Part shown: piece by piece, positions 19,156 through 63,426 of the stretch
Numbering within the stretch: the first letter of the stretch is position 1
Layout of the letters: each line of letters starts with the position of its first letter
Program-made: the position numbers and the translations under genes
Notes under the pieces: model-generated
What the model saw: the letters and a program-made list of their open reading frames with translations, nothing else
Database searches by the model: none
What the model was told of the DNA's origin: nothing
Source: Isurus oxyrinchus
Lineage: Eukaryota
Direction: 5' to 3'
Length of the DNA stretch: 64,000 nucleotides
NCBI GenBank assembly: GCA_026770705.1
Contig: JANJGN010000152.1
Location: 1-64,000 of the forward strand

Positions 19156-19659
19156 ATGGGAATCCACTTTGTTTTCACCCTGTGTGTCTGTTTACCTCGT
19201 GAGTACCGATCACACAAACAGACATTATGTGGATTTCATATAAGGCTGCCCGAGTCCATCCCAATTACAGACAGGGGGTTTAACCCGGTTCTGTGATTCG
19301 GCTCTGATGGTCCATGAAACTATCTCTGTTTAATTTCCAGGAGTTTTCAGTCAGCAGTGACACAAACCCCGGCAGCGGTGACCAGGAAGTAATGTCAGTC
19401 TCTCACCATTACCTGTGTTTTCCACGCTGGTTATTGGGATATTGTCCAAACGGTGCTTTTCATCAGACAAACCCAGACCGGAGCAGAGCGGGAGCGGATC
19501 TCCAGCGGGGGGACATTGTTTGTGTCAATGGATAAAACAGAAAAGACATTTTCGTTGGAAATTTGGGATGTGAGAGTTGAAGGCACTGCCACCTATTACT
19601 GTAAAGCTCAGTACTACGTTACACAGCGACTGGCCTCGGCTTCCCGGGATACAAACATT
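19156..19659 (+). pseudogene. NAR-TCR V (VNAR-like) pseudogene: leader 19156-19198, V 19341-19621, RSS 19622-19659
   Basis: TATAAA at 19126; leader MGIHFVFTLCVCLP; V reads AVTQTPAAVTRK*CQSLTITCVF...FIRQTQTGAERERISSGG...KTFSLEIWDVRVEGTATYYCKA, with short VNAR-type FR2/CDR2 and extra FR1 Cys; CACAGCG-22-ACAAACATT. Confidence 0.88.
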
Positions 19660-19862
19660 CTCATGCAGATTATCACAAAAACAAGTAAAAAAGCGGAGTT
19701 AATTCTGCCGTTAAACGCCCAGAGTTCAGCCTCATACCGTCTGTCCCCCAGTCTAGTTTGTAGTGAGATTGGATTATTACCGTTAACAACTTGAGTTTTA
19801 AAACTACGAAGCGTGTGCGGATGGTGAAGGCTTCCCCGGGGTTGGTGTCGGTGAAACAGTGG

Positions 19863-21940
19863 AACGTAGAAACATAGAAATAGGAGCTGGAGTAGGCCGT
19901 TCGGCCCTTCGATCTTGTTCCGCCATTCAATATTATCATGGTTGATCCTGGATCTAAACACCATACTCCCACTTAATGCCACTAATATCCAAAAATATGT
20001 CGATTTTTTTTCTTGAATATACTCAGTGACTCCATAGACTTCTTTGGTCGAGAATTCTACAGGTTGACCATCCTCAGAGTGAAGGAATCTTCCTCATTTC
20101 GGTCGCAAATGGCCTTCCCCGTATTCTGCTGTGGCCCCTGGTTCTAGACTCCCCAACCAAGGGAAACATCCTTCCTGCATCTAGTCTGTCTAGCGCTGTT
20201 AGAATTATATGTGTTTCAATCAGAACCCCTCTCATTCTTCTAAACTCTAGTGAATGCAGGCCCAGTTGAACCAATCTCTCCTCATACAACTGTCCTGCCA
20301 TCCCCAGTATCAACCTCGTGAACATTCGCTCCACTCCCTCTACGGCAAATATATCTTTTCTTGCGTAGAGAGACCAAATCTGCACGCAATGCTCCTGGTG
20401 TGTTCTCACCAAGGCCCTTTGCAACTGCAGTAAAACATCCCTACTTCTGAAATCAAATCCACTTTAAATGAAGGCCAACATATCATTTGCCTTCCCAATT
20501 GCTGCACCTGTCTGTTTAGTTTCATTGGCTGGTGTACAACGACACCCAGACTCCTTCGTACACCCATATTTCCCAATTTATCACCATTTATATAATGCTC
20601 TGACTTTCTGTTTTCACACCGAAGCGTATAACTTTATATTTATCCACGTTATACTGCACTTGCCATGTGATTGCCGACACAGAAAACTTGTCTAAATTGC
20701 CCTGAATCCCTCTTGCATGCTCCTCACATCTCACAGCCTCGTGCAGTTTTGTGTCGTCATCAAACTTGGAAATATTGCATTTGGTTTCCTCATCCAAATT
20801 ATCTATATATGTTGTGAATAACTGGGGCTCAAGCACTGATCGCTGCGGTACACCACTAGTCAAGGCCTGCCACCGGGATAAAGACCCATTATTCCCACTG
20901 TCTGTTTCTGGTCTGTCAACCAATTCTCAGTCCAAGCCAGTATATTACCTCCAATCTCATGTGCTTTACTTTTGTCCACTAGCCTCTTAGGTGGGACCTT
21001 ATTAAAATCTTCTTGAAATCCAAATACACCAGATCTAGTGGTTCTCCGTTATCTATCCTACTAAAAAACTCGAGTAGATTAGTTAAGCATGATTTCCCTT
21101 TCATAAACCGATGCTGACTTTGTCTAATCTCATTGATGCTTTCCAAGTGTTCAGTTATTTTATAACAGACACTAGCATTTTGCTCACAACTGATGTTAGG
21201 CTAACTGCTCTGTAATTATCTGTTTTTGCTCTCCTTCCTTTTTTTAAAATAATGGGGTTACATTTGCCACCCCCAATATGTAGGAACTGTTCCAGAGTCT
21301 ATAGATTTTTGGAAGGTGACCACCTATGCATCCAATATTTCCAGCGCCACCTCCTTTAGACATCTGGGATGTGGATTATCAGGCCCTGGGGATTTTCCAG
21401 ATTTTAACCCCATTAATTTCTCCACCACAATGTTTTTCACTAATGCTGATTTCCTTCAATTCCTCGCTCTCACTGGGCCCGTGGTTCCCTAACATTTCTG
21501 GGAAATTATTTGTGTTGCCTTTTCTGAAGGCAGAACCAAAATATCTCTTCAATTTTTTTGCCATTTCTTTGTTCCCAATTATCGTTTCCCCCGTTTGTGA
21601 GTGTTTGTTTACTAATCATTTTCTCTTCCGCATATTTATGGAGGCTTTTACTATCAATTTTTATGTTCCCTGCAAGTTTACTCTCGTACTACATTTTCCC
21701 CTTCTTGATCAGTCTTTTTTCCAGTTTTGCTGAATTCTAAACTACTTCCAACCCTCAGGATTGAAGCTTTTTCTGGAGATTTTTTATGTCTACTCGTTAG
21801 ATCTAATACTATCCCTAATTTCTTTTGTAATCCATGGTTGAACCATCTTTCCCATATTATTTTTGCGCCAGACGGGAATGAATAATTTTTGTAATTCATG
21901 CATACGTTCCTTAAATATTAACCATTGCCGATCCACTTTA
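19863..21940 (-). mobile_element. CR1-type LINE, 5'-truncated and decayed
   Basis: RT fragments SGVPQRSVLEPQLF...KFDDDTKL and LVRTHQEHCVQIWS; short-repeat 3' tail. Confidence 0.9.
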
Positions 21941-22193
21941 ATTTTAATTTCCACCATTCAGTTATCTTTCTTTGATATTTTTCTCGGTTTATATGAAGCG
22001 AATATCTCATTCCCAGGACCATTTACGCAGAGCTGAGGGCCTCAGAAAGAATAGTTTGAACAGATAGAGACTTTGAAACATTGAATATTGATTATTCATT
22101 TAAACCTGCTTTATAATTGTCTACTGCCTGATGATGATTTCCCGGCAGTTGAGTTGTCAATGGTTCTTGAACTGGGAGAGTGAGAGTGGTGTG

Positions 22194-22238
22194 CGAATTA
22201 TGTAGATGGATCCAGGATGGTGGTGACTGGCACAGCCG
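22194..22238 (+). pseudogene. Degenerate NAR-TCR J segment (NYVDGSRMVVTGTA)
   Basis: Resembles xxGSGTVVTVTA; donor mutated to ATAAGT; nonamer-like GGTTCTTGA at 22162; lies between NAR V and supporting V. Confidence 0.6.
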
Positions 22239-23634
22239 ATAAGTGACTCTGAAGCCCGCATGTTGCAGACTGTGCTGGATATTGTTCACAGTCAGCTTCT
22301 TGTGATCAACATCGTTTCAATCACATCGAAACTAAAAAAACGATTTCTAAGGGACCTTTTCCATTGCAGGCTTCGATTTAGGAATAGGGTATGATCGGAC
22401 AGTCGGGTCATTTACCCGCCATTTGTTTCAATTGTCTTCATATACCCAATCATTTCCTCCTTTTCCATCCTCAGATCGAAATGTGAAAGTTTGGAACTGC
22501 AGACATTTCTCTTTATTGAATGTCGATGTTTGAGAGATGGGATTGCTGTAATTTCTCTGTATCCCTGATTACTGTGAATTAAAAACGCAAAGTGCAGTGA
22601 GAGAGTGAGGATGATGCATTAATCTTATAAAGGAGAACAGGGACATAAGGAAAAAATTATAAACTGAGAGAATGTTCATTTAGAACCAGCAAGAAATAAT
22701 TCATCGAATGGGAGAGAAGGATTGGATGATCTCTGGGCTGTTCAAAGTACAATCCGAGCAAAGGGTGGTGGGCAATGTTTATGGAGAGAAGGACTCCAGT
22801 TTGGAATGCTGTGTAAAGTCTGGTATCTAACTTAGGGAAGGTTGTACATGCTTTGGAACAAATGTTCATCAGACTGATTCCTGAAGTAAAGGGATTGTCC
22901 TATGGGAAGGGATTGAGTAGACTGGACCTGTGTTCCCTGGAGTTTACAGTAATGAGGGCGATCTCATGAGAACACATGATACCTTTAAGAAGCTTGCGAG
23001 GGAAGGTTCTGGTGGGAGTTTCCTCAGGTTGGAAAGTCTATAACTGGGAGCCATAGTTTCAGCATAAGGGGTCGGCCATTAGAATGGGGAAGAGAGAAGT
23101 TTCAATCAATGCTGATTAATCACAATCACTTTCATTTCGATCATGCTTTGCACAGTGATGCTGATGCTGATTGTCCCATACAATCATTTTTTGGAAACTG
23201 ATTGCCATACTGATAATAAATGTTCCATCGGGGTGTCACTCACCAAGGAAAATAGAAGCAGAAATGTAATATACAACATAGAACCATGCCAAGAGGTAGA
23301 ATGACATTCGGCCCATCGTGGAGGTGCTATCACTTTCAAAGTGCAATCCAATTTTTACCATTTTTCCTGTTGTAGTATAGGTACATCAGCCATTTGAAAG
23401 TTCCCACTGAGTCTGTTCGCACCACCCATTCTGACCGCGCAGTGCAGATTGGAAAAATTCTCGATGCAAAAGAAAATTATCATCTCTGCACTTAATCACA
23501 TCTCAACGACGGTGAATACGGTTGGAACAGGCTTGCTTCAAGTTTAGAAAAACGAACGTTTCATGTCATTGACAAATTCTCCCAGGTAAACCATGGCTAA
23601 ACAAACAATTAATGTTCGTTTTTTTATTCTCCAG

Positions 23635-23723
23635 ATTCCAGTTCCCTGGTGTCTTAGTGCCCGCCTCTACAAACATCTGCTGTCGGTGACACCATTACTT
23701 GAAGCTGTGAATGTTCAGGGTTA
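23635..23723 (+). pseudogene. Leaderless NAR-TCR-supporting Vdelta, 5' fragment
   Basis: Acceptor TTTTATTCTCCAG|; DSSSLVS*CPPLQTSAVGDTIT*SCECSG; no leader exon seen; cut off by a tandem repeat and an assembly gap. Confidence 0.7.
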
Positions 23724-23727
23724 GATC

Positions 23728-23909
23728 ACGGAGAGAGCTGTTCAGAAACCTGAACATGGTGGGATTACAGACACATAGTGATACAGAGCACGGAGAGAGC
23801 TGTACAAAAACCTGAACATGGTGGGATTACAGACACATAGAGATACAAAGCGCGGAAAGAGCTCTATGGAAACGTGAACAAAGTGGGGATTCCAGATGCA
23901 GTGATACAG
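23728..23909 (+). repeat. ~61-bp tandem repeat (3 copies) running into an assembly gap
   Basis: CACGGAGAGAGCTG...AAACCTGAACATGGTGGGATTACAGACACATAG.GATACA repeated. Confidence 0.9.
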
Positions 23910-25129
23910 NNNNNNNNNNNNNNNNNNNNNNNNNNNNNNNNNNNNNNNNNNNNNNNNNNNNNNNNNNNNNNNNNNNNNNNNNNNNNNNNNNNNNNNNNNN
24001 NNNNNNNNNNNNNNNNNNNNNNNNNNNNNNNNNNNNNNNNNNNNNNNNNNNNNNNNNNNNNNNNNNNNNNNNNNNNNNNNNNNNNNNNNNNNNNNNNNNN
24101 NNNNNNNNNNNNNNNNNNNNNNNNNNNNNNNNNNNNNNNNNNNNNNNNNNNNNNNNNNNNNNNNNNNNNNNNNNNNNNNNNNNNNNNNNNNNNNNNNNNN
24201 NNNNNNNNNNNNNNNNNNNNNNNNNNNNNNNNNNNNNNNNNNNNNNNNNNNNNNNNNNNNNNNNNNNNNNNNNNNNNNNNNNNNNNNNNNNNNNNNNNNN
24301 NNNNNNNNNNNNNNNNNNNNTATGATAAAATAGCAGATAGAAAACGTTTTTGCCATTTAAGGACTCTTCGTTCCGGAGACAAAGGAGCAGGAAAAACAGA
24401 TTGATAGATTTTATATGATGATTGACATAGCTTCAGATATAAATGCACATGCTGACACTGACTGGGATAAAAAGCTTGTCAGAGAAGCAATTAGAATTAT
24501 AGATTGATGAATAGAAGAGAGTCGTATCAATGTTGGAATGGGCAAACAGAGCGAAAATTAAAAATGAATGAAACAATCAAATAACAATGTTGGTTGACAG
24601 CCAAAAGTGAAAACTCCATCGATATATTGGCCACATTATTTGCGCTCTGGGACCCTGCGCTTTATTTGGAGCCTCCTGTCAGTCGAGGCTTTCGGAATCA
24701 AGGTGGGGGGCAGGGGTGGGAGAGGAGGGAGGAGAATATTGAGTGGTCTTCGCCAGCATATCGGCCCCCATTGCTTCCTGCATCTATCCAAAAGCCTATG
24801 ATCATTGCCGCAGTTTGTGACAATCAGCACTGCCTGCGGTCCCGCAAGCAGTCTCCCTGAACTCTTCTGTTGTGCCCCTGATACCTGGACTTGAGAATGT
24901 GTGAGGGTTCTGTGTATTCTTGCCGGTCACTGTCTATTTCTCTCTCCCNNNNNNNNNNNNNNNNNNNNNNNNNNNNNNNNNNNNNNNNNNNNNNNNNNNN
25001 NNNNNNNNNNNNNNNNNNNNNNNNNNNNNNNNNNNNNNNNNNNNNNNNNNNNNNNNNNNNNNNNNNNNNNNNNNNNNNNNNNNATGCGTTTGCTCGCAAA
25101 AAATAAATATTTCGTGTTTAGAAAATATA

Positions 25130-27550: not shown

Positions 27551-27819
27551 ATTTGATTTGGCCAAACTATATGCAGATGAAAGTCACCCATAATTACAGA
27601 TGTTTCTTTATTGGATACTTCTCTAATTTCCTGCTTAATTCCAGTCCCAGCTTCACCACAGCAGTTTTGGGTCTATATACAACCTCCACTAACATTTTAT
27701 GCTCCTTATACTCATCGATAAGCAGAAATCAATTTCTGGGTGTGCTTGTTAAAATGTTCTATTTTAAATGTTCCATTCAAATGTTCCATTTTAAACATTT
27801 TCAAATGGAACACAAATGG

Positions 27820-30440: not shown

Positions 30441-31278
30441 CTGCGGTTCTTAATTTTCGTTTCGCCTTCTAATTGCATTTCCGTACCTGCCCGCAATGTT
30501 GAGCAGCTTTTTCCCGAACTCCGCTGTCAGCTTCGTGAAGCCTCTGACTTCGGCCTTGTCACGGGGTTTATTTGATTGAGTATTGCTGTTGCTGGTTGAG
30601 AGATAATCGTACACCATAAACAGTTTTCAGAACAGAATGTAGTGACTGTCATCTTTAAAGAGAGCACCCAAGCGCACAGCCCCCCAAGGTCTGTTGTACC
30701 CCCGAGTGCCGTTTCATTCTCAGTGACTGCAAACAGAAATTCTGAATATTCCCAATCTGGAAGTCAAATATGGCTCAAATTAAACGCCATTTTAAATGCA
30801 GAGCTGGTGCAGGAAGCATTTGGCTAAATGACTGGGAGAATCTCCGGAATATTGGAGTAAGAGTGGATTGGGGGCTTTCTCCCGGTGTCCTGGGCCCACA
30901 TTCCACCTTTAACAAACACCACCCAATACAAACACATGCACCGACCTCCCAGTTCACCACTGTGGGGAAAGGAAGGCGGCAGCACAACTGGCAGAAAGTA
31001 AAGCTCCCCTCCCCCACCCCTGTACACCAGAGTATTGTGGGAGGGGTTTTCACATCCGGATAACTATCCAAATGAAGGGTCAGAAAGTTGCAGTTTCCTT
31101 TAATAAACCTGTCTCTTATTTCCACAACACTTAGCCAGCGACCCGGGAACCATGCGGCAATAATCTCAGCGAAACTGCCCTGTGCAAATTTACTCGATCC
31201 CCCTAAAGTATTTCAATCCAGCTCTGAGATCCGGTCTCCCAGTGCAGTCCAAAGTTGCAATCTTCCAGCTCCCCGGAA

Positions 31279-31530
31279 TATAAACCCTCAGCTCCAGGCA
31301 GATGGGAATCCTCCTTCTTTTCACTGTGTGTGTCTGTTTACCCCGTGAGTACCGATCAAACAAACCGACATTGTTTGGATTTAATATAAAGCTGCCCGTA
31401 TCCATCTCTATTACAGACACTGTCCTGGGTTTTAAATCCGTTCTGTGGTTCGGTTCTGATGCTCCATTAAAATCTCTCTGTTAAATTTTCAGGCTCTTTC
31501 ACTCAGTCGGGCCTGTGACCCAGATCAGGC
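31279..31530 (+). pseudogene. Second NAR-TCR promoter, leader (31302-31344, MGILLLFTVCVCLP), intron and first codons of V (..GPVTQ)
   Basis: Clearly paralogous to 19126-19365; homology stops after VTQ. Confidence 0.8.
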
Positions 31531-37365: not shown

Positions 37366-37399
37366 TTTCTCACTATTCCTGTTTTAGGAATGAGTTCAC

Positions 37400-38950
37400 A
37401 GAATCACAGAATCACACAGAAGAGGCCCTTCGGCCCATCGAGTCTGCACTGACACGTGAGAAACACCGGACCTACCTACCTAATCCCATTTACCAGCATT
37501 TGGCCCATAGCCTTGAGTGTTATGATGTACCAAGTGCTCATCCAGGTACTTTTTAAAGGATGTAAGGCAACTCCACCACCCTCCCAGGCAGTGCATTCCA
37601 GACCGTCACCACCCTCTGGGTAGAAGAGTTTTTCCTCACATCCCCCCTAAACCTCCTGCCCCTCACATTGAACTTAAGCCCCCTTGTGAATGACACTTCA
37701 ACTGAGGGGAACAGCTGCTCCCTATCCACCCTGTTCATGCCTCTCATAATCTTGTACACCTCGATCAGGTCGCCCCTCAGTCTTCTCTGCTCCAGTGAAA
37801 ACAACCCAAGCCTATCCAACCTCTCTTCATAACTTAAATGTTTCATCCCAGGCAACATCCTGGTGAATCTCCTCTGTACCCCCTCCAGTGCAATCACATC
37901 TTTCCTATAATGTGGCGACCAGAACTGCACACAGTACTCCAGCTGTGGCCTCACTAAGTTCTATACAACTCCAACATGACCTCCCTACTTTTGTAACCTA
38001 TGCCTCGACTGATAAAGGCAAGTGCCCCATATGCCTTTTTCACCACCACACTAAAATGCCCCTCCACCTTCAGAGATCTATGGACACACACGCCAAAGTC
38101 CCTTTATTCCTCAGAAATTCCTGCCATTCATTGAATACTTCCTTGTCAAATTACACCTTCCAAAGTGTATCACCTCACACTTTTCAGGGTTAAATTCCAT
38201 CTGCCACTTATCTGCCCATTTGACCATCCCGCCTATGGCTTCCTGCAGCCCAAGACACTCAACCTCACTGTTAACCACCTGGCCAATCTTAGTGCCATCC
38301 GCAAACTTTCTAATCCTATCCCCACCCCCGGACCAAGCACAGATCCCTGTGGTACGCCACTGGACACTGGCTTCCAGTCACTAAAGCATCCTTCTGTCAT
38401 TACTCTCTGCTTCCTTTAGCGAAGCCAATTTTGAATCCACCTTAGCAAATTACCCTTCTTTCTAAGTCTCCCATGTGGGGCCTTGTCAAAGCCTTTGCTG
38501 AAATCCATATATACCACATCAACTGCACTACCCTCATCTACACCTGGTCACCTCTTCAAAAAATTCAATCAAATTTGTTAGGCATGACCTCCTTCTGACA
38601 AAGCCATGCTGACTATCCCTGATCAAATCTTGCCTCTCCAAGTGGAGATAGATGCTCTCCTTCAGAATTTCTCCAATAGTTTCCCTACCACTGACATAAG
38701 ACTCACCGGCCTATAGTTCCCTGGCTTCTCTCTACAACCCTTCTTAAATAGCGGAACCACATTAGCTGTGCTCCAGTCCTCTGGCACCTCCCCCGTGGCC
38801 AGAGGGGAATTAAAAATTTGGGTCAGAGCCCCTGCGATCTCCTCCCTTGCCTCCCTCAGCAGTCTGGGACACAAATCATCCGGACCTGGAGATCTGTCCA
38901 CTTTTAAGCCTGCCAACACCTCCAATACCTTGTCACTCACTGTATCAATT
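37400..38950 (-). mobile_element. CR1 LINE 3' portion
   Basis: ORF RPQLEYCVQFWSPHYRKDV...; KVDRSPGPDDLCPRLL...PGNYRPVSL. Confidence 0.92.
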
Positions 38951-39589: not shown

Positions 39590-41290
39590 TAAAGCAAGTA
39601 ATTAGGAAAGCTAATAGAATGTCATAATTTAATATGAGGGGATTTGAGATAAGAAGATTATGCTTCAGTTGTACAGGACACTGGTGAGACCATATCTGGA
39701 GTATTGTGTAGATTATTGGCCTCCTTATTTAAGGAAAGGTGTAAATGCGTTAGAAGTAGTTCAGAGAAGGTTTACTGGACTAATACCAAGAATGATCAGG
39801 TTGTCTTATGAGGAAAGGCTGGACAGGCTAGGCTTGTATCTGCTGGAGTTTAGAAGGCTAAGAAGCAACTTGACCGAAATCTTTCAGATCCTGAGGGGCC
39901 TTGACAGGATGAATGTGGAGAGGATGTTTCCTCTTGTGGGATAATATAGAACTAGAGGTCACTGTTTAAAAATAAGGGATCCTTCATTGAAGACAGAGAT
40001 GAGAGAATTTTTTTTCTCTCAGAGGGTCGTGAGTCTTTGGAACTCTCTTCCTCAAAAGGCAGTGGAAGCAGAGTCTTTGAAGGTTTTGAAGGCAGAGCTA
40101 GATAGATTATTGATCATTATCAGGAGGTCGGTGGGAGGTTACAATCAGATCAGGCATGAACTTATTGAATGGCGGAAAGCAGGCTTGAATGGCCGAGTGG
40201 CCTACTCCTAGTTCATATCTTCACATATTCTTTGAATCCAGGCTGCTTGCAGTGCCTGTATGCCACAAAGTCAAGGATGATTGACATTTTCACTGAGGAA
40301 CATGTAAACAGACAGTGGATTCATTCGGTGCGATGGTATTTTCCAGTTAGATAACGATCTAGATGAAGGAACTGAGGCTAAGTTTGCAGATGATACAAAG
40401 ATATGTGGAGGAACAAGTAGTATTGAGGAGGCGGGGAGGCTGCAGAAGGAATTAGACAGGTTAGGAGAATGGGCAAAGAAGTGGCAGATGGAATACAACG
40501 TGTGAGGTCATGCACTTTGGTAGGAAGAATAGAGGCATAGACTATGTTTTAAATGGGGAGAGAATTCAGAAATCTGGAGTGCAAACGGGCTTGGGAGTTC
40601 TAGTCTACGATTCTCTTAAGGTTAACTTGCAGGTTGAGTCAGTAGTTAGGGAGGCAAATGCAATGTTTGCATTCATTTCGAGAGGACAAGAATATAAAAG
40701 CAGGGATGTGCTGCTGAGGCTTTATAAGGCTCTGGTCAGACCACGTTTAGAATATTGTGAGCAATTTTGGGCCCCGTATCTCAAGAAGGATGTGCTGGCC
40801 CTGGAGAATGTCCAGAGGAGGTTCACGAGAACGATCCTAGATAGGAAAGGCTTAACATATGAGGAATGTTTGAGGACTCTGGGTCTATACTCGATGGAGT
40901 TTAGAAGGATGAGGGGGGATCTGATTGAACCTTACAGAATACTGAAAGGCCTGGATAGAGTGGACTTGGGGAAGATGTTCCATTAGTAGGACCCGAGGGC
41001 ACAGCCTCAGAGTAAAGGGAAGACTTTTTAGAACAGAGATGAGGAGAAACTTCTTTAGCCAGAGAGTGGTGAATCTATGGAATTCATTGCCACAGAAGGC
41101 TGTGGAGGCCACGTCATTGAGCGTATTTAAGACCGAGATAGGTAGGTTCTTGATTGGTAAGGGGATCAAAGGTTACGGGGAGAAGGCAGAAAAATGGGGT
41201 TGAGAAACTTATCAACCATGATTGAATGGCGGAGCAGACTCGTTGGGCCGAATGGCCTAATTTCTGCTCCTATGTCTTATGGTCTTATGA
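39590..41290 (+). mobile_element. Two tandem CR1 LINE 3' fragments
   Basis: LYRTLVRPYLEYC and LYKALVRPRLEYC ORFs. Confidence 0.9.
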
Positions 41291-45899: not shown

Positions 45900-47030
45900 G
45901 CGTTGTGCTTTAGCTTTTGTATGTGTGTGCATCAGTATCTCGCGCTTTGCATTACTGTTTGTTTGTGTGTCCATAGGTGTGCATGTGTGTTAATGTGTGT
46001 GTTCATGTGCCAATGAGTGCTGATTTGTGTATTTTTGTGTCTGCATCTTTACGTATACTTTGTTTTTCTGCTAATGTGGGTGTATGCGTGTGTTATTGTG
46101 TGTGTTTATGTCTTGATTTCCAAATTTACTTATTACTATCTGTGTAAATGTGTATTTACCTGTTTAATGTGTGCCTGCTAATATGAGTGTTAATGTTTCT
46201 TTTTGTGTTCCACGTGTAAGTCAGCATATTAATGTCTGGGTCACAGCGTCTGTGTGTGTGTGTGTGTATGCGCGTGTGTGTGTGACACAGCGAGAGAGAG
46301 AGTTTTTAATATGTGCATTTGTGTGTTGATCGATATTTAGAACTATGTATCAATGTGTTTTTATGTTTTCATATGTACTAACGTGTGTTTTTTGTTTTCT
46401 AGTGTGTATGAGTATATTCATATTTGTGTCTACATGTGTGTTTGTGAATGTGTTAGTCTGTTCTTCTGTGTTTTTGTGTCTGGGTGTCATCTGCTCATAT
46501 GTGTGCATGTGTTAATGTGTGTCCATGCATTTGTTTTAATTTGTACGATAGTGTGTGTCTTTATGTCTGGATTTATGTCATTGTGAACGTGTAATACTGC
46601 ATATGCTAAAACTTACATTTGTTCTTTGTGTCCTTGTATGAGTCTGCCTGTCTGGTTTTATCTGTTTGTGTGTGTGTGATTGTGTATATGTGTGTGAGTG
46701 AGTGTGTCTGTGTGTGTATTTCTGCATGTGTGTGATTGTATGCGTGTGTATTTCTGCATGTGTGTGATTGTGTGTACGTGTGTGTCTGTGTATGTTTGTG
46801 TGTCTGCACCCATGTGTTTGTGATTGTGCGCATATGTGTGCGCGTGTGTATGCACGTGTGTCTGTATTTGTCTATGTGTGCCTGCCTGTGTCTGCCTGTG
46901 TTTGTGTGGCTGCGCATGTGTGGGTGTAAATGTGTCTGCCTGTACCTGTGTGTGTTTGTCTGTGTGTCTGTGCCTATGTGTGTGTGTACGCATGTTTGTG
47001 TCTGTCCATTTTTGTCAGCTGTGTGTGTTT
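45900..47030. repeat. TG-rich low-complexity region between CH4 and TM1
   Basis: Degenerate (TG)n. Confidence 0.9.
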
Positions 47031-47599
47031 TTACTATTTTCCCGAATTTTACCAGTACCAATGATCGAGTCTGACCTTGATGTTGAAAATTTTGGTGAAT
47101 ATTTTCAATGTTCTGTGCATAAACATGTTTTCTGTGGGATGCAAGGTGATATCAGGTGCACGAATGCAAACAATCAATCATGTGCCTCATAAAATTCAGG
47201 GACAGAACCTTGAAAAACCCAGGGAGGATTCAATCACCAGTATAGATTCGGATTGTGGGAAATTAATCTTAGCATAAGCTTAACAGGAACAAGAGTATTA
47301 AAACATCTTCAAATTATGTTGCATAAATATATGTTTTGCAACATCCTAAGCATGATGAGAGTTTAAAATCTGTGGCCAGTAAGCTGGAAGCCAACGTGGA
47401 CTGTTGGTAACTGAGTCCTGACAGTAGAGACCGTTTCCTTCCAGATTCTCTGCTCGGTGAGTGAGGGTCCAGTGAGCTAATAGTTTTGTTCTGTCTGGTT
47501 GTCTAAACAATTTCCCTTTCAGTTCTCTCTGCTGAGAAGGTGGAGACACATCGGGTTAACCAATGACGTTCCTCTTCTTTTTGTTTAGCAAGTGGAGAT

Positions 47600-51929: not shown

Positions 51930-53310
51930 TGCGGATCAGTAGCTGGAGTAGGCCATTCGGCCTCTGGGGCCTCCTCCACCATTCACTCCGGTCATAGCTG
52001 ATATGATTGTGACGTTAACTCCACGTTCCTGCCTAATCTCCGCTAACCTTTGACTCCCTTGTTAATGAAGAATCTCTCTACCTCTGCCTTGAAATTTTAA
52101 TGACTCCTCCTCCATCCCTCTCTGGGGAAGAGAGTTCCAAAGTTTCATGACTCTTTGAGAGAAAAATAAAATCCCCTCATTTCCGTCTGAAATGGGAGAC
52201 CTCTTATTTTTAAACCGTGTTCCCTATCGTTAGTCTCTCTCACAAGAGGAAACATCCTTTCAGCATCCACCCTGTCAATTTCCCTCAGGATCTTACATGT
52301 TTCAATAAAATCAGCTCTCATTCTTCTAAACTCCAATAGATACAGGCCCAGCCTATCCAAATTTCCACATAAGATAACCGACGACACCTCCCAGTATCAT
52401 TTGAATTAACATTCTCTGAACAACTTCTAATGCTTTTATATCCTTTCTTAAATGAGACCAAATCTGTACACAGTAATTCAGACGAGGTCTCATCGACACT
52501 CTGTTAAACTGTAACATAATATCCTTCCATTTATATTCTGTTCCCCTTGTGATAAATGCCAACACTCCCTTTGCCTTCCTCATCACTAGCTGTTCCTGTA
52601 TTATAACATTTTGTGATTCATACACCAAGGGATCCACATTCCTCTGTATCTCAGGGTTCTGCAGTCTCTCTTCCTTTCAATAATATGCTGCTTTTATATT
52701 CTTCCTGCCAAAGTGGACAAGTTTATATTTTCCCACATTATACTCCATCTGTCATTTTTTGCCCACTCACTTAACCTATTGATATCCCTTTGCTGACCTT
52801 TTATCCCCTCTTCACCATTTACTTCCCTATCTGTCTTTGTGTCATCAGCAAATTTAGCAAATTCATTCAGTCCTTTCATTCAAGTCATTGATATAAATTG
52901 TAAATAGTTGAGGCTGCGGCAATGATCTCTGTGGAACTCCATTTGTCACATCTTGCCAACCTAAAATAACCAATTTATCCCTGCCGTTTCCTGTTAGCTA
53001 ACCAAACTTCTACTCATGCTGAAATGTTACTGCTGACACCATTATTTTGTGCAGTAACCTTTGATGTGCCACTTTGTCAAATGCCTTCTGGTAGCCCAAG
53101 GGCAGCACACCCACAGGTTCTCCTTTATTCATGCTCCTTGTTACTTCCTCGAAGGACCTCAAATAAGTCAGCCAAACATGATTTCCCTTTCACAAAATCA
53201 TGACGGGTTTGCATAATTGCATTTGAATTTTCTAAGTGACCCGTGATAGATTCCTGAATAATCGATTCCAGCATTTTCGCTCGGACAGATGTTAAGCTAA
53301 CTGGCCTGCA
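51930..53310 (-). mobile_element. CR1 LINE fragment in IgM J-C intron
   Basis: KFADDTK, RPRLNYCVQIW, LGLYLLEFRRMR. Confidence 0.88.
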
Positions 53311-53449: not shown

Positions 53450-54780
53450 CACTATAGACTGGCTCTCAGCCCTTCCCCCACCCTCCGCCTCTCTGTTCTT
53501 TCCCCTCCACCTCTCTGCCCGGTCTCCCCCGCCTCTCTGCCCTTCCTCCCCAAGCTCTCTGCCCTTTGTCCTCAGCTCTCTGCACTTACTCCACGGCTCT
53601 ATTCGCTTTTGCCCAGCTCTCTGACCCATTCCATTGGCTCACTGACCTATCCCCTGGCTCGCTGACCTTTCCCCCTCAGCCCTTTTCCGCCTTCCACCTC
53701 TCTGTCCGCTCCCCCCTCTGCCTCTCTGCCCTTACCCCTGCCTCTCTGCCCTTATCCCCCGCCTCTCTGCCCTTTCCCCAGCTCACTGTCCTTTCCATCG
53801 ACTCTCTGCCCTTTCCGTCACCTCTCTGCCCTTCCCTCTCTGCCGCTCCACTCTTACCCCCCGCCTCTATGCCCTTTCCCCCTCCGACTCTCTGCCCACC
53901 CTCCTCTCTGTCCTTCCCCCCTCTGCCTCTCTGCTCTGCCTTCTCCCTGCACCTGCCCCCTCCCGCCTCTCTACCCTGTCCCCCACCCGCCTCTCTGTCC
54001 TTTCCCCCAGCCAGCTCTCTGCCCTTCCCCCTCCCACCTCTCGGCCCTTTCTCCATCCCGCCTCTCTGCCCTTACCCCCCACCTCTCTGCCTTTACCCCC
54101 TCTCCTCTCTGCCCTTTCCCCCACCTCTCTGCACTTTCCCCCCTCTGTCTCTATGCCCTTCCCCCCTCCTCTCTGCCCTTTCCCCCTCTTCCTCTCTAAC
54201 CACCCTCCTCTCTGTCCTTCCCCCCTCTGCCTCTCTACCCTGCCTCCTCTATGCCCTTTCCCCCTCCTGCCTCTCTGCCCTTTCCCCTACCTGCCTCTCT
54301 GCCGTTACCCCCCACCTCTCTGCCCTTCCCCCCCGCCTCTCTGCCCTTTTCCCCACTCACCTCTTGGTCCTTTCCCCCTACCGCCTTTCTGCCCTCCCTC
54401 CTCTCTACCCTGTCCCTCTCCCGCCTCTCTGCCCTGTCCCTCACCCGCCTCTCTGCCCTTTCCCCCCGCCTCTCTGCCCTTTCCACCACCCACCTTCCTG
54501 CCCGTTCCACCTGCCACCTCTCTGCCATTTCCCCTTGCATCTCTGCCCATACCATCTCCCGCTTCTCTGCCCGGTCACTGCCCTTCCCCACCCCCCCACC
54601 TCTCTGCCCTTTCACTGGCTTGCTGACCTTTGCCCCATCCCAATGCATTTTCTGCTGGATCCCTGCCCTTTTCCCGGACTCTCTACCCTTCACCCGCAAC
54701 CCTCCCCGGCTCTCTGCCATTTCCCCCACCTCCCTGCCCTTTCTCCCAGGCTCTCTGTGCTTTCCAACGAAGCTCGTCGC
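53450..54780 (-). repeat. Purine/G-rich (sense strand) ~20-bp tandem repeat in J-C intron
   Basis: Plus-strand unit CCTCTCTGCCCTTTCCCC repeated over ~1.3 kb. Confidence 0.92.
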
Positions 54781-54884: not shown

Positions 54885-55575
54885 AGTGATTGAGTGAGTG
54901 AGCGCGTGCATGATTGACAAAGTGAGGGTGGCTGAGTGACAGAGCAAGGGTGGGTGTCTGAGTGAGTGAGGGTGCATGGGTGAGTGAAGGTGTGAGTGAG
55001 GGTGGTGGTGAGTGGGCGTGGGTAGGTGTCTGAATGTGGGTGAGTGAGAATGGATGAGTGAGTGTGAGGGTGGGTGATTGAATGAGAGTAGCTGAGTGGC
55101 TGAGTGAGGGTTGGTGGATATGTGAGGGTGGGTATGTGAGTGAGGGTGAGTGGGTGTGTGAGGGTGGGTGGATGAGATATTGAGTGTCAGTGAAGGTAGG
55201 TGAGTGAGGACGGGAGGGTGAGTGAGGATGAGTGAGTGAGGGTGAGTGAGTGAAGGTTAAAGTAATTGATGGTGAGTGAATGAGGGTGTGTGAAGCTGGG
55301 TGAGTGGGTGAGGGTGAGTGAGGGTGGGTGAAGGAGTGAGATTGAGTGACGGTGAGTGAATGAGTGTGGGTGAGTGAGGGTGATTGAGTGATTGTGAGTG
55401 AGGGTGAGTGAGTGATGAGTGAGTGAGGGTGGGTGAGTGAGGGTGATTGAGTGATAAGTGTGAGTGAGGGTGAGTGAGTGAGTGAGGGTGAGTGAGGGTG
55501 ATTGAGTGAGTGTGAGTGAATATGAGTGAGGGTGAGTGAGTGAGTGAGGTGAGGGTGAGCGATTGTGGGTAGTGA
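54885..55575 (+). repeat. (GAGTGAGTGAGGGT)n simple repeat
   Basis: Direct inspection. Confidence 0.9.
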
Positions 55576-56325
55576 GGGTGCCAAGGTGCTGCAGGCTCAT
55601 CAAGGCAATGTTTCTCCGGATGATTTTCTGCTCAGGCTCAGCTTTCCATTGCCTGTTGTCCACAGCCGAGCTGGGGGCTCCTCCATTCGGCTCCACCACC
55701 TCCACCTCCTCCTCTTCCTCTCCATCGATCCTATCCTGATTCTCCGTATTGACCAGCTTTCAGTAACACCGGCTGTGTAAAGACAGGCAGCAGTGTAGAT
55801 CACTGGCCAGCTGCTTTAATGCCGATGCCTTTCTTTAAGAAACCCGTGTCAGTGCGCGAATAGGCAGACTGAGGGGGCTGGAGGGGAAGGGTACAGCAAA
55901 ACCAGGAAGGGCCGTGCAGGCATCTTGCACCAAGTGTGCACCAGTATTGGGGATCCAGGCGGCCGTGGTCTCAGTCACATCCCTCCACTTTTCTTGTTTC
56001 TTTGTGTTTGGTTCAACACTTGGAAATTCTCCACATATATAGTGATGTCACCTGTGTAATTTCATTTTACCCAAAAAGGCATCAGAAATGGAACAATGAA
56101 CATGCCTGCAGCTTAAAGGATCTTCTTTCTGAAATTAACATTTTCAGCCCACTTNNNNNNNNNNNNNNNNNNNNNNNNNNNNNNNNNNNNNNNNNNNNNN
56201 NNNNNNNNNNNNNNNNNNNNNNNNNNNNNNNNNNNNNNNNNNNNNNNNNNNNNNNNNNNNNNNNNNNNNNNNNNNNNNNNNNNNNNNNNNNNNNNNNNNN
56301 NNNNNNNNNNNNNNNNNNNNNNNNN

Positions 56326-57062
56326 NGCGTGAGAGTGTTTGAGATAGACAGCACATGTGTGTGAGAGAGAGAGTGAATGTGTTTGTGTATGTGTGAGAGT
56401 GTGTGTGGGGGTGTGAGTGATATGTAGTATATGTAGTATAAGTACGTGAGAGAGAGTTTGTGTGAGAGAGAGAAAGAGTGTGTGAAAGAGAGAACCAGTG
56501 TGTGTCAGAGAGAGAGTGTGTGTGCGTGAGAGAGCGAAAGAATGAGAGCGAGTGTGTGTGTGAGAGGAACAGTGTGTGTGTGTGTGTGTGTGTGTGAGGG
56601 AATGTGAATGTGTTTCTGTGTGCGTCAGAGAGAGAGAGAATGAGGATGTGTGTGTGTGTGAGAAACAGTGTTATGTGTCTGTGTGTGACAGAGGGGGAGA
56701 ATTGAAAGTATTTATGTGTGTGTGGCAGAGAGGGTGCATGTATGTGAGATATCGAGTGGGTGTGTGTAAAAGAGAGAGAGTGTGTGCATGTGTTTGTGTG
56801 AGAGAGAGAGAGTTGCATGTGTGAGAGTGCAGGTGTGAGAAAGAAAGAGTGCATGTATGTGTGTAGGAGATAGTGTGCACGTGTTAAAGGGAGTTTGTGT
56901 GGGAGAGAGTGAATGTGAGTGTGTGTGTGACAGAGAGAGAAAGATAGAGTGTGTGTCTGTCAGAGAGAGTGCATGAGAGAATGAATGTGCACTGTGTGAG
57001 AGAGAGCGTGTGTGACAGAGAGAGTGAGCGAATGAGGGTGTGTGGTAAAGAGACTGAGTGTG
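56326..57062. repeat. (GT/GA)n degenerate microsatellite next to assembly gap
   Basis: Direct inspection. Confidence 0.9.
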
Positions 57063-60000
57063 TCGAGGTAGATCAGCCACAATCTTGCTGAATGGGGGGC
57101 AGGATCGAAGGGCCTAATGTCCTCCTCATGCTCTCATTTCTGTAATTCATTCCTCTCCCTGTAGGTGGCAATCCAGTGGCTCCCCCGCAGTTGGTTATTT
57201 GTAGCGGGAGTCTGGTATTTGTCCATTTCAATCGTTTAAATAACTCTGATCAGATCAGAACAGGCACTGCTCTCTGGAGCCTCATTTTCACTCCCTGATT
57301 CTGTTCGTTCTGAAATTGTGCTCAAGTTCAGGTCACTCACATTCAATGATTTTCTGATACTCAAAATGCTTAAACATAATTAATTCATTAAAATTTATAC
57401 ATGTTCTCTGCAGAAATATTGTTAAAAACAGTTAACGTGTGTCATTTCAACCGAGCAAAGGAACAATTTATTTTCGCAGATCTGGCTCGAAAACCCACGG
57501 CCAGTTAGTTCAATGCTGATTCAGTTTGTTTGACCTCTGCAGGGAGAAGACTCCCAGGTCAGGAACAGGACACGTTAAGATATGGATTAAATTCCCCACT
57601 CCTCCCCCAGTACACTCCTGTCATCAGCTGCAAGGGTGGGATTCAACAGAAAGCCAACTCTCCACTGAACTGTCAAACACTCTGGGGCAGGTACAGCACT
57701 GGTTTGACATAAAATAAAACTCTCTCTACATTGCTCCATCAAATATAACCAGGAGAGGGTTCAATCCGGTTTTGATATAAGTGCTGTGCTGCAGGAGCCG
57801 GTCAGAGGCTGGGAATTCTGTGGCGAGTAATTCAACTCTTATTGCCCAAAGAAAACTGACCATCTACAAGGCTCAAGTCAGGACTGGGATTGAATAGTTT
57901 CCGCTTGCCTCAATGTGTGAAACTTCAAAAAACCCCAAGAAACTCCATACTATCCAGGACAAAGCAGCCCACAGAATTGGTACCCCATCCACTAACTTAA
58001 ACATTCCCTCCCTCCCCCACCAATGCACAGTGACTGCAGTGTGTGCCATATACAAGATGCACTGCAGCAACTCGCCAAGGCTCCTTCAAAACCCGCAACC
58101 TCTCCTAACTAGAAGGACAAGGGCAGCAGGTGCTTGAAACATCGCCACCTGTATGTTCCCCTCCAAGACACTGAACATCCTGACTTGGAACTATATCGCC
58201 GTTCCTTCACTGTCAATGGGTCAAAATCCTGGAACTCCTGACCTAACAGCACTGTGAGTGAACATGCAGCTATTCAAGGAGGCGGCAGTTCAACACTTCT
58301 AAGGATGGGCAATTAGGATGAGCAACAAATGCTGGCCTTGCCAGCGACCCCAACATCCTATGATAGGATTAAAAGTAAGATACAGAGTAATTTCTTCCTC
58401 CGCATTGTCCAATCAAATAGGTCAAGGACTGCGACAGCACAGATTAACATAGGATAAAACTCTCTCTGCATTGCCTAACCGATCACTCCCAAGACAGAAA
58501 CATCACTGGCTTAAAATCGACCAAATCTCCTTCGACAGTCTGTCTGTCGTTTCTGAACTGTCCTTTCTGACTGTCACAATGGGTTGGGCACCTCATTTCT
58601 GAGGCACCTGGTCAAAAAGTCAAACTTTAATATTTCTCACAAATACAAGTCTTGTGAAGAAATAAATCGAACTGCACTTCCTGAAATACAGGAGAGCGAA
58701 CCAGAAGGTTAACAACCAGCCAGGAAGATTCCTGGTCCCAGCACAGTGACCATGCCCACAGAAACAGAACAGACACAAACGGTGCAACAATCGAGTTCCC
58801 AGCAGATAGATCTGTTCAATCTGTCCATTTCATTCAAGCTGTTTGATTCCAATTGATCAACAGTCAACTTGTTACAATTATTCTATAACTTCTTTCAAAT
58901 TAAACTGATTTTCATTTCAAAACTCCCTTTGAAGTCCATTTAATTCTCCGTCTGACTCAAATCTCCAAACAATGTACGATTTAAGTTACCCTGAAAATGA
59001 GCACAGCAAATACTACAGATTCAAGATAATTAGTTGTCCGTAATAAAGACTCAATGACAGGGTAAGAATTAAACAAATCAGGAAACATTCACATTGAAAA
59101 CCGATTACATACTGATATCTTTTGATTTTAGGTATAAATATAACCAATAAAAACATCAAGACGAAACACATTATCGAGCTGAGCACAGCTGAGTAAGAAA
59201 AGTATTCTTTTCTGAATTCATTTTGGATACAATTAAAAATTCTCTCCACCCTTTGAGATTTTGCATTCACTATAATGTCCAGTACCCTATTTAATTGTTG
59301 GAGTTCATTTATGTTGAATTAATTATCACTAATATTATATTGTAAGTTAATTATCTTGTTATTGTCAATTCATTTTCTTGTTAGCTGATTTCTACTTTAT
59401 AATAAAAATAGTTTTCAATGATTGAAAATTTGTTTCTCCTTGGTACTTTGTGAAATAATTGAGGTTTATTTAAATCAACCTTACACTGAAGCAATGTTAA
59501 ACAATAAACTTCAAATTACTAGATGGTAACTTTCAGGCAAGTATATCAATTTTACTTAAATCTGATCAATATTTACCATAGTATTTTTACTTCTCCTGCT
59601 TTGTTTTAACGGACAAAATTTTAAACTATGCGTTTCTGAACAGATTGAGAAATCATAAGTTCCATCTATTCTCATCAAGCAATTCACATGACGAATTTAT
59701 GAGCTGAATATTTGAAACGCTTTTAAATCTGACCGGGGTCACATCGCATTAACGTCGATGAGGTGTAATATCATTTGTTTACTGAATTAATCTTGTCTTA
59801 ACTCCAAGCTACATGTAAACAAATCTTCCTGGCAGTTACTTATTATCAATAAAATTGCTTCCTAGATAACAATCCCTATAATTTAATTGTTAATTATATT
59901 ATTCACTGAACGAAGATCCAAATTGATCAGTATAAAACTTGATGAGAACAATTCATTCAGATCATCTGCACCACTGAAATATAACTGGCAAGTTGATTCC

Positions 60001-60428
60001 AGATTTTGTCCTTCAAGTTAATATTTAATAAGAATTAAGCATGAATCTCAGATATAATCTGTTCTTCTCCTATAATTCTATTCTGTGCACAGCACAGCAA
60101 TAGGAGACAGGATGTTGTTATTAAGTTCAAAACTAATACTAACGTTTGCAATTAAATTAACCTGTTCGAATTTCAAGCTTTTACTTGTCAATCTCTATTC
60201 AAATGCAGTCTGCACCTTCCTACAGTTCAAAAAATGTAAGAACAATTCCTTTACTGCCAGCGAATTACACCCCCCAGTAAACTGTTTAAAATTAGATTAG
60301 TGACAATTATCTCGCTACCAAAATCCCAATGACATTGAAGGAATAATATGGTTATGGCTGCACAGAAAGAATGTAATAACCGGATAGACATATTGCCAAA
60401 CAGCAATGTCAAACTCTTCTTTAAGTCA

Positions 60429-60436
60429 ATGCAAAT
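60429..60436. promoter_or_regulatory. Octamer ATGCAAAT in J-C intron, candidate enhancer site
   Basis: Perfect octamer about 1.2 kb into the intron from JH; function inferred only. Confidence 0.35.
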
Positions 60437-61661
60437 GTTATCAGGGATATAAAAAAGTAATTCAAAATCTCTTTTGAAACTGAACAATTTTGTAGTCAAT
60501 ATATTCTTACTGAAATTTTTTCAACCATAATCACAAAATATTTCCAGCCTAAAAACTTTCCCGATCATGTTAGTTGCGCGCAGAGCACAGCAGAATTGTG
60601 AAAGGCGATTCATGATCAATTAGGTTAATATGAAAGCTGTTCCGTCAATATGGAGAAATATTACCACATTATAATTGTTTGAATTTGTATTAATTTTACT
60701 CTACAATTTGAAAACTTGGTAATTATTTAGTTTCTGATTGCAGTAACGACTTATGTTCTGAATGAGCGTCATAATCCATGGTTTAGTTTAATCTGCAATT
60801 ACCACTTAAAATAAAGACAAAATGTTCTAACACATTTTAAACGCTTTTTTTCCATTTCTGAAACCTGTTTGTTTTCTGCATACAATCGCGCTTCAAGCAG
60901 ATACAAACGCGTAGGCTGCTTCAATTCAATCGCAAAACGTGTAACCGCTCAATGTCACCGAGTTTAAACAAAGCAGAAACAATGCAGAACCGCCGAACCG
61001 TTTCATAAATTCTACTTGTTCAAAGTCACCCAGACACACAATCTCCTCAGCAGAAAATACACCAAAATCACATCACTGAGGGGCTGAAACCCGTTTCATG
61101 GAGAATTCATTGTAACATTGCAAGAAAATCTCAATATCGAATCCAGACAACCGCTCGTCACCAAATGAATGAATAATTAAACTGAACAGAAATATGAAAT
61201 AATGTCAACAGCATTCTGAGTAGGCGGAACATGTTCAACAAATTAATATTAAAACTTAAGCATATTTGCTAAAATTGGGTTTGATTTCAAATCTATTTAA
61301 ACCCTTGTGCAACAGATGGTAAAACCCGCAGCCATTAGATGTCACCGAGATTAAACAATGCAGAAACGTCAAACTGTTTTCACAAACGTTAGATATTTCA
61401 AGTAGCCCGGCCACACAGTATCCTCAGCAGGTAAACACCAAATCACAACGACCAAAGTCTCAATCCATCAGCAGCACTTGTTATCAAGACACAGCGGAAT
61501 TATATAACTCAATTTCAGCAGAATCACATGAAACATTGTAAAAATTCTGCATACAGAATCCACCAAACCCAGGTTACGTTTGGCTGAATGAATTGTTAAA
61601 ATAGACAAAAATGTAAAGCAAAGATCAAATAAAAGTTACTAAATAAATGTGTGGTTCTTAC

Positions 61662-61709
61662 CGGCAGTCACTGTCATCATGGTCCCTTTCCCCCAGTAGC
61701 CCATACCGT
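61662..61709 (-). CDS. IGHJ: IgH J segment (GMGYWGKGTMMTVTA); 23-RSS at 61710-61748
   Basis: WGxG motif; CACAGTG-23-ACAATAACT on plus strand; donor GTAAG. Confidence 0.96.
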
Positions 61710-62077
61710 CACAGTGTTACATTCCCTGGGCTGTGCCATACAATAACTGTCCCTGCACGAAAAAGACAGAAATCCACCATTATTTTAAATATTCATAAGT
61801 CAGGGGCAAAAAAAGATCACGATGAATCTTCACGAAATTATATTTGCGTATGTGGATATCTTTAGCTATTTATCAATGATCATCATGTTTTATAATTCAC
61901 AGAATAACACATAAACATTTTATTGAATTCACCAACTGATGAATGCATAATTATCACAGCTTTTCCATCTTAAACCATGCTTTTTGGGCAGTGCTGGGTA
62001 GAAATAATACTTCAGTGTAAATATAGCAGGATTGTAAAAGCGAGCACTGAACCCGGCAGACTCAATTAGTGCTGAGG

Positions 62078-62146
62078 GGTTTTTGTATTCTTAGTAACTG
62101 CTGTGCCACCCAGTATATCACAGCGAGACACATCATGTGAAATACT
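62078..62146 (-). other. IGHD: IgH D2 segment ATATACTGGGTGG (62106-62118) with 12/12 RSS
   Basis: Plus strand reads GGTTTTTGT-12-TGCTGTG-[13 nt]-CACAGCG-12-TGAAATACT. Confidence 0.92.
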
Positions 62147-62456
62147 GCGGCAGACTGTTCACTGTAAATGCAGAGATTTAATTTCACTGCGCTCACAAAA
62201 ACCTGATTCCGACACGCCTAAGAGTGAATCAGTGAGATATTTCAGCTTGTGCTGGTCATTATATTTATAAATATGATTGGAGTTCTTTAAAAGCCTCTGT
62301 GAAGATTTATCGTGTCCGTAAACACAAACAAAGCAGAAGACTTTTATATATTTTTGCAAGCCAATATTACTTATACCCATTATTTTATTTAGCTCCTATT
62401 TTCTTTGACTTTTCCTGTTGTGATCGTGATCACCAATTTGAACAAACTCCTTCTGA

Positions 62457-62539
62457 GGTTTTTGTATGAGGATGTCGCTATCCACAGCACTGTGACCCAC
62501 TGCTGTAGTATCACAGTGAAATACACCCACACAAAAACT
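62457..62539 (-). other. IGHD: IgH D1 segment ATACTACAGCAGTGGGT (62495-62511) with 5' 12-RSS and 3' 22-RSS
   Basis: Plus strand reads GGTTTTTGT-22-CACTGTG-[17 nt]-CACAGTG-12-ACAAAAACT. Confidence 0.95.
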
Positions 62540-62908
62540 GCACCCACTCTCTGTTCAGTGCTGCCTCTCAATATTCACTTCAAATAGACGTTTACTCCTG
62601 ATCTAGTTTAGTATTTATGCAGCAATTTACAAAACTCAATGAACAGTGATCCACTACAAGTATTAGACATATTCAAATGAACATTATATCCAGGTTTGTA
62701 ATTGCGGAAACTGTTAACAGTAAATATGAACACAGCCGAAGTTCAGCCCATGATATCGATTGTTTTGTTAGGATTTACTGTTAAATTTGCTGTTTTACTT
62801 TGGTCAGAAGCGACTTGTTGTCGGCTTTTGATCATAACAGTTAATATTATATTTAAAACAAGTACTGACCGTCAGGTTATGATGGAAGTTGCTGAGTTTC
62901 TCTTGATC

Positions 62909-62947
62909 TGATCTTGGTCGGGTCCAGCCCTGGTTCCTCTCGCTGTG
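62909..62947 (-). other. VH 3' RSS (CACAGCG, 22/23-nt spacer, weak nonamer ACCAAGATC or CCAAGATCA)
   Basis: Heptamer at 62941-62947 directly after CARD codons. Confidence 0.85.
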
Positions 62948-63252
62948 GTCTCTTGCACAGTAATAGATGGCGGTGTCTTCAGTCTTCAGGCTCGTCATGT
63001 CCAAGGAGAAGATGTTCCTTGAAGTGTCTTTGGACGCAGTAAATCGATTTTTAATTGCTGGGGCATAGTTGTTGCTGGATGAACTATAGTAGTAAACCAG
63101 CCACTCCAGCCCCTGTCCGGGAACCTGTCGGACCCAGTACATGGTGTAGCTGCCAAGATCGAAGCCGCTGGTTTTACAGATCATTCTCAGGGAGCCTCCG
63201 GGACGTCCGGTCTCTGCCTCTGGCTGAGTCAACACAACCTCCGACTGGACAC
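62948..63252 (-). CDS. IGHV: IgM VH exon, intact ORF ([16 protein letters not shown]...YYCARD)
   Basis: Acceptor TTTTTACAG; both Cys, WVRQ, GLEWL and DTAIYYCAR motifs; no stops; followed by heptamer CACAGCG. Confidence 0.97.
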
Positions 63253-63380
63253 CTGTAAAAATATATCAAAAACCCCGAGGATTAATACTGGTGAAATGAT
63301 TCCTGACTCTGTAACATTCCAGAGAGAGATTAACTCTGAGACAGTAATAGTGAGAGACTTGGAGAATGAAAACTACTCAC

Positions 63381-63426
63381 GGGATAAGAAAGTCAGCAAC
63401 AAACTGAGAGAAATCGCCGACCTCAT
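63381..63426 (-). CDS. IGHV: IgM VH leader exon (MRSAISLSLLLTFLS)
   Basis: ATG at 63426, hydrophobic signal peptide, phase-1 donor GTGAGT; TATTTAAATA at 63516-63525 upstream. Confidence 0.95.

Follow-up and report, generated by a model that had tools for sequence, protein, structure and literature searches.

A structurally intact IgM mini-cluster of Isurus oxyrinchus beside NAR- and TCR-type V elements that appear largely decayed

In sharks, an immunoglobulin heavy chain (IgH) cluster is built from a single V, two or three D segments, a single J and one set of C exons (PMC6795676). Such clusters can lie close to T-cell receptor (TCR) genes: tight linkage of IgH and TCR alpha/delta has been described in four elasmobranchs, in an antigen receptor complex in which IgM, IgW and IgNAR clusters show linkage to TCR alpha/delta, and V exons of TCR type are found between IgH clusters (Flajnik et al, Sci Adv 2025, PMC12227049). 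Rearrangements of IgM and IgW VH to TCR delta are reported to be common in sharks and have been attributed to this close linkage (PMC12227049; PMC6795676), a proximity that is held to “easily” support VH-to-TCR-delta rearrangement (PMC12227049). Linkage of this kind bears on the origin of two receptor systems from one region, on the formation of chimeric VH-TCR-delta chains and on the movement of NAR V between loci, as has already been argued (PMC12227049). Here we analyze 64,000 nucleotides of Isurus oxyrinchus (assembly GCA_026770705.1, JANJGN010000152.1, positions 1 to 64,000 of the forward strand; hereafter the window), which carry a complete IgM mini-cluster on the minus strand, together with NAR-type and TCR-type V elements. 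Judging from sequence, we have good confidence that the cluster is a shark IgM mini-cluster of the ordinary kind, structurally intact and situated in the IgH/TCR-alpha-delta region, and that its TCR-type neighbours are probably decayed relics without function.

The IgM cluster extends over 18,346 bases (63426-45081) and comprises a split leader, VH, D1, D2, JH, four Cmu exons with a secretory tail, and two transmembrane (TM) exons (Table 1). Exons were read directly, their borders and frames were verified by script, exon by exon, and each exon was searched singly. All frames, splice sites and canonical residues are intact, some 575 codons are open, and every exon junction is of phase 1 save that between TM1 and TM2 (phase 0). 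A preliminary description of this DNA had reported a full cluster with intact open reading frames (ORFs), phases and splice sites, and our re-reading and script check of every element bears this out. The VH exon belongs to the Pfam V-set family (E 6e-18) and, by direct reading, holds the complementarity-determining region (CDR) strings given earlier for it (CDR1 GFDLGSYT, CDR2 YYSSSSN); its identity reaches 84-85% with gene models of Scyliorhinus torazame and Chiloscyllium punctatum, and 79% with an Ig heavy chain V of horned shark (Heterodontus HV01). The leader string is the same as that of HV01 (..FLSRVQS), and this match confirms the leader splice. At the other end of the cluster, Cmu4 and its tail align with Ig mu chains through the tailpiece. 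A secretory poly(A) signal (AATAAA, 48471-48466) lies 30 bases past Cmu4, and an internal donor after 48561 leads to TM1 for the membrane form.

The recombination signal sequences (RSSs) of the cluster are laid out as V 22 / 12-D1-22 / 12-D2-12 / 23-J, which permits V-D1-D2-J joining under the 12/23 rule and which we take to be typical of horned-shark-type clusters. The likeness to that cluster type (VH-D1-D2-JH-Cmu) extends to one V, two D, one J, four C exons, the secretory tail and both TM exons; the cluster of the window differs by weak nonamers at VH and 5' of D2, and by a long, repeat-rich J-C intron that contains an assembly gap. From this anatomy, RAG would join V (22/23-RSS) to D1 (12), D1 (22) to D2 (12) and D2 (12) to JH (23), all within the cluster, after which splicing would connect the VDJ exon to Cmu1. 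Secreted IgM would result when the Cmu4 stop and the poly(A) signal behind it are used, and a B-cell receptor when the internal Cmu4 donor is instead spliced onto TM1 and TM2.

Table 1. Coordinates of the elements discussed in the text (positions in the window).
Feature	Position	Strand	Details
VH leader exon	63426-63381	minus	phase 1; MRSAISLSLLLTFLS; GT..AG intron next
Leader intron	63380-63253	minus	GT..AG
VH exon	63252-62948	minus	open; canonical Cys22, Trp, YYCAR
VH RSS	62947-62910	minus	CACAGCG, 22-base spacer, nonamer ACCAAGATC
D1	62511-62495 (with signals 62539-62457)	minus	ATACTACAGCAGTGGGT; 5' 12-RSS and 3' 22-RSS, both near consensus
D2	62118-62106 (with signals 62146-62078)	minus	5' 12-RSS heptamer CGCTGTG; 3' 12-RSS CACAGCA-12-ACAAAAACC
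JH 23-RSS	61748-61662 (including JH)	minus	near consensus
JH	61709-61662	minus	GMGYWGKGTMMTVTA; donor GTAAG
JH-Cmu intron	61661-51365	minus	10,297 bases; repeat-rich; holds a gap, microsatellites and a minisatellite
Cmu1 exon (CH1)	51364-51065	minus	Pfam C1-set, E 6e-16; phase 1 junction
Cmu2 exon (CH2)	50852-50538	minus	Pfam C1-set, E 2e-18; phase 1 junction
Cmu3 exon (CH3)	49916-49605	minus	Pfam C1-set, E 2e-8; phase 1 junction
Cmu4 exon and secretory tail (CH4)	48890-48499	minus	Pfam C1-set, E 2e-21; tail ends ..NSCQ, then stop
TM1 exon	45356-45229	minus	ends ..NIWTTASTFIILFFLSIFYSTAVTLAK; spliced from the Cmu4 internal donor
TM2 exon	45089-45081	minus	IK, then stop; AATAAA at 44664-44659
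NAR-type V gene fragment	31202-31506	plus	promoter, leader exon, intron, ~15 bases of V; no V body
NAR-type leader and V, pseudogene	19157-19659	plus	RSS CACAGCG-22-ACAAACATT
Putative TCR-type V relic	11835-12236	plus	in-frame stop; Ser for second canonical Cys
V-type exon, open	8610-8906	minus	Phe for first canonical Cys, Leu for canonical Trp; ends YYCGLRD, then heptamer CACAGTG
Putative TCR-type V relic	7246-7590	plus	in frame only from WYRQ to YCC; frame lost in the N-terminal third
V relic, C-terminal part only	6393-6551	minus	Gly for second Cys; 23-RSS-like site next
Putative TCR-type V relic	5440-5675	plus	several in-frame stops
Putative TCR-type V relic	886-1149	minus	in-frame stop
ORF fragments with LEYCVQFWSP-type motif	13462-13689, 15832-16098, 20074-20424, 37553-37954, 39660-39944, 40510-40986, 52145-52637		
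Runs of N	23910-24320, 24949-25083, 56155-56326		none abuts an exon; no reading frame crosses one

Two NAR-type elements lie on the plus strand. The element at 19.2 kb resembles the upper V of NAR-TCR (a doubly rearranging TCR delta in which an NAR-type V sits atop a supporting V-delta) in that it has its own leader and a 22/23-type RSS and lies among TCR-type V relics. Among solved structures, the stop-free part of the exon comes closest to shark VNAR domains (E 6e-10), and intact shark relatives, few in number and unnamed or “hypothetical” proteins, are found at 53-68% identity. It differs from NAR-TCR by a nonsense codon and a phase clash: a TAA at 19390-19392 makes the exon read ..RK, stop, CQSLTITC.. 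where the intact relatives read ..RKECQSLTITC.. (with Glu), and the phase 1 leader conflicts with the V frame at either candidate acceptor. Because of these two lesions, we class the element as a pseudogene. No D, J or supporting V-delta was recognized between 19.6 and 23.9 kb, where the stretch enters a gap. An IgNAR cluster was also considered for this V and rejected as unsupported, since neither a D array nor C1-set exons follow it.

The second NAR-type copy, at 31 kb, departs further from NAR-TCR in retaining its leader only. It matches positions 19050-19354 at 80% identity (E 6e-78) over promoter, leader, intron and ~15 bases of V, at which point homology stops, and no V-like frame was found beyond it in the profile scan; the surroundings of the two copies share only transposon fragments. 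This fragment and the Cmu and TM exons are on one gap-free contig, 13,575 bases separating it from the TM2 stop, and the two are convergent (tail-to-tail) across a transposon-rich spacer of 13.6 kb on the 3' side of the IgM cluster. The earlier account of a shared contig, a distance of ~13.5 kb and a tail-to-tail arrangement was thus accurate.

To survey the remainder of the window, we ran V and C profiles built in this analysis on all of its stop-to-stop frames, alongside a separate motif scan. The only C-like frames in the profile scan are the four Cmu exons, and further V-like frames occur only at 0.9-1.1, 6.4, 7.3, 8.6-8.9 and 11.8-12.2 kb, to which the motif scan adds 5.4-5.7 kb. These six putative TCR-type V relics (0.9-12.2 kb, in mixed orientation) each contain a stop or a frameshift or lack canonical residues, the in-frame stops being at 1.0, 5.5 and 11.9 kb, such that none of them combines the open V-set frame, the Cys23/Trp41/Cys104 triad and the usable RSS of a functional TCR alpha/delta V. 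Motifs and one Atlas lead suggest the TCR alpha/delta type; searches of solved structures with the relics returned mostly antibody chains and did not type them. The 64-kb window yielded no TCR D, J or C segment (the scan for TCR J motifs covered 1-45 kb). The exon at 8610-8906 is the one open frame among the six, and no recognizable nonamer follows its CACAGTG heptamer. Its sole database relative, from Chiloscyllium punctatum (54% identity), shares both residue replacements as well as the read-through into the heptamer; the exon could represent a V family that lacks the canonical disulphide and has been retained in the two sharks, or else an ancient pseudogene common to them. We also observe that the relics at 6393-6551 and 11835-12236 are of the same type (..ISG.YL.AAD.S.K.GYL..S.L....AVYY.A..HSVR) in opposite orientations, and that the second Cys is lost in both (Gly versus Ser).

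Counting both NAR-type copies, seven of the eight NAR/TCR-type elements beside the IgM cluster are broken or fragmentary, and the eighth is open but non-canonical. The adjacency of an IgM cluster to NAR-TCR-type and TCR-type V segments that was put forward in the preliminary description is thus real, but none of the eight is clearly functional. The same neighbourhood, including the link from proximity to VH-TCR-delta rearrangement, is already known from the elasmobranch antigen receptor complex (PMC12227049). As there, TCR-type V exons stand beside or between IgH clusters, and an IgM mini-cluster shares a scaffold with V exons of NAR-TCR and TCR-alpha/delta type; an IgH cluster and a TCR-type V on one stretch of DNA are given here by the gap-free contig that holds both the NAR leader fragment and Cmu, the other relics lying across two gaps. 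We see no difference in kind from that complex, to which the window adds base-level detail and TCR-type neighbours that look non-functional. The TCR alpha/delta constant genes and PSMB5, whose linkage is also a feature of the complex, fall outside the 64 kb covered here. A further likeness, that of an IgH-type V near TCR-type V segments, is to TAILV or VH-delta (IgH-like V in TCR-delta loci); this identity was rejected for the present VH, which has its own D1, D2, JH and Cmu and so belongs to a full Ig cluster rather than being a lone adopted V. The relics are most plausibly debris of a TCR V array, either a neighbouring or an ancestral one, that was swept along between the IgH clusters. At base level, the window exemplifies how every TCR-type element beside an intact IgM cluster can be decayed or non-canonical, which favours relic debris over a working pool of shared V segments at this spot.

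How far these elements belong together depends in part on the assembly. As previously described, there are no Ns between 25084 and 56154. The first two of the three gaps flank a 628-base island and divide a 0-23.9 kb contig, which holds the NAR-type V and the TCR-type V relics, from a 25.1-56.2 kb contig with the NAR leader fragment, Cmu and TM exons. The third falls inside the JH-Cmu intron, 4.8 kb from Cmu1 and 5.3 kb from JH. It is flanked on either side by degenerate GT/GA microsatellites whose plus strand is strongly G-rich (GC skew between +0.6 and +0.95 over 54.9-55.7 kb, and between +0.56 and +0.79 over 56.1-57.1 kb); the matching repeats and skew fit one repeat tract broken by the assembler, and the order and orientation of elements across the gap are those of a normal cluster.

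The preliminary description had also proposed looking for this VH joined to Cmu as opposed to Cdelta. Sequencing runs were sought by words of the V exon, and four of them were mapped on 61500-63600 as short Logan contigs. No run on record as RNA contains the V exon, the best runs containing 45% of the sampled words. In contigs of two RNA-like runs (X2, X5) the leader intron is removed exactly as predicted, a result that applies at the level of the VH family; leader-V splicing was thus seen in RNA-derived contigs, but no link to a TCR constant region. Indeed, the mapped contigs show leader-V splicing only, with no V-D-J join, J-to-Cmu splice or TCR junction among pieces so short that they could hardly show one. 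A DNA-like run covers most of 61500-63600 at a high and very uneven word depth, which points to many near-identical copies, i.e. a multi-copy family. Taken together, the run data neither support nor refute use of this cluster. One X2 contig agrees with JH and its signal but departs from the window sequence upstream of the nonamer, at 61753 (minus), as would fit a sister cluster with another D2-JH spacer.

Several of these observations weigh against an ordinary intact cluster among dead neighbours. The V exon at 8610-8906 is open and its odd residues recur in the bamboo shark, so that some doubt attaches to the death of every neighbour; the C exons (45.1-51.4 kb) and the V-D-D-J block (61.6-63.4 kb) are on separate contigs, and their joining rests on scaffolding; and the mapped contigs are short pieces of a multi-copy family that cannot be assigned to this cluster. 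Furthermore, two nonamers are weak, that of VH (6/9, with G at position 6) and the one 5' of D2 (5/9), and no octamer was found within the 574 bases upstream; recombination and transcription of this copy are therefore putative. The label “apparently functional” given to the cluster earlier is borne out for its open frames and splice sites only. Those poor signals, together with the lack of any run with more than 45% of the sampled V-exon words, would also speak for a young pseudo-cluster, open in frame yet recombinationally or transcriptionally silent through degraded signals. We think this unlikely: all heptamers retain CAC, the D1 and JH signals are near consensus, and ~575 open codons with canonical residues would be surprising in a long-dead copy. 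An assembly artefact, in which the V-D-D-J contig was joined to the C exons of another cluster or the 0-23.9 kb relic contig was misplaced beside the IgM contig, would draw on the three gaps in or near repeats and on the near-identical VH copies to which the uneven depth of the DNA run points. It seems improbable, as the cluster has normal order and orientation, the G-rich microsatellites on both sides of the 56.2-kb gap are those expected of one broken tract, and the key adjacency (NAR leader fragment to Cmu and TM exons) crosses no gap. A J-C intron of 10.3 kb and a span of 18.3 kb are, moreover, ordinary sizes for shark IgM clusters, which likewise counts against an artefact.

The preliminary description also inferred a junction between B- and T-cell receptors, at which VH could serve its own IgM in B cells and, in T cells, be recombined in cis with TCR-delta D-J-C through inversion or deletion, and at which V segments could be exchanged with TCR delta. 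The 22/23-spacer RSS of VH could pair with a 12-RSS under the 12/23 rule, and TCR-delta D segments carry a 12-RSS on their 5' side. TCR-type V relics flank the IgM cluster, and VH-TCR-delta rearrangements are, as noted, reported as common in sharks and ascribed to close linkage (PMC12227049; PMC6795676). The window nevertheless speaks against a working junction, which we regard as having only a small chance of being correct: neither TCR D, J or C segments nor a clearly functional NAR- or TCR-type V were detected in its 64 kb, the VH nonamer is weak, and the mapped contigs contain no VH-to-TCR junction, though they were hardly able to show one. The more specific arrangement, in which the IgM cluster sits inverted within reach of a working TCR-delta D-J-C on the same chromosome, so that VH would be paired with Cmu in B cells and with C-delta in T cells through inversional rearrangement in cis, is in our estimation very improbable. 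Were it true, a single germline V gene would be common to both lineages, and the relic NAR-TCR and TCR V elements would mark a block co-duplicated as IgH clusters spread from the TCR locus. We therefore retain the reading of an intact IgM mini-cluster with probably decayed neighbours.

The JH-Cmu intron contains a degenerate minisatellite (53489-54572; ~1.1 kb, 21-base unit) that begins 2.1 kb upstream of Cmu1. On the sense strand of the IgM cluster (minus), G makes up 54% of it and A 30%, and there are 73 runs per kb of at least three G. In position and strand bias the repeat is reminiscent of a switch region, but it shows no enrichment of WGCW/AGCT motifs, and cartilaginous fish are described as being without switch regions (PMC4279169). 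The Cmu4-TM1 intron in turn carries a CA/TG-rich simple repeat (~500 bases, at 46600-47200), which gives rise to long spurious ORFs of the HTHT../CVCV.. type. ARAGORN and Rfam (gathering thresholds) returned no tRNA or other RNA gene in the whole window, and nine transposon-like ORFs of the window had no match in Pfam. Fragments of one recurring ORF are found on both strands and also inside the JH-Cmu intron, sharing the motif ..LEYCVQFWSP.YRKD..ALE.VQRRFTR..LSYEERL.RLGL.SLE.RR.RGDLIE.., which we take to be similar to the C-terminal part of ORF2 of long interspersed nuclear elements (LINEs).

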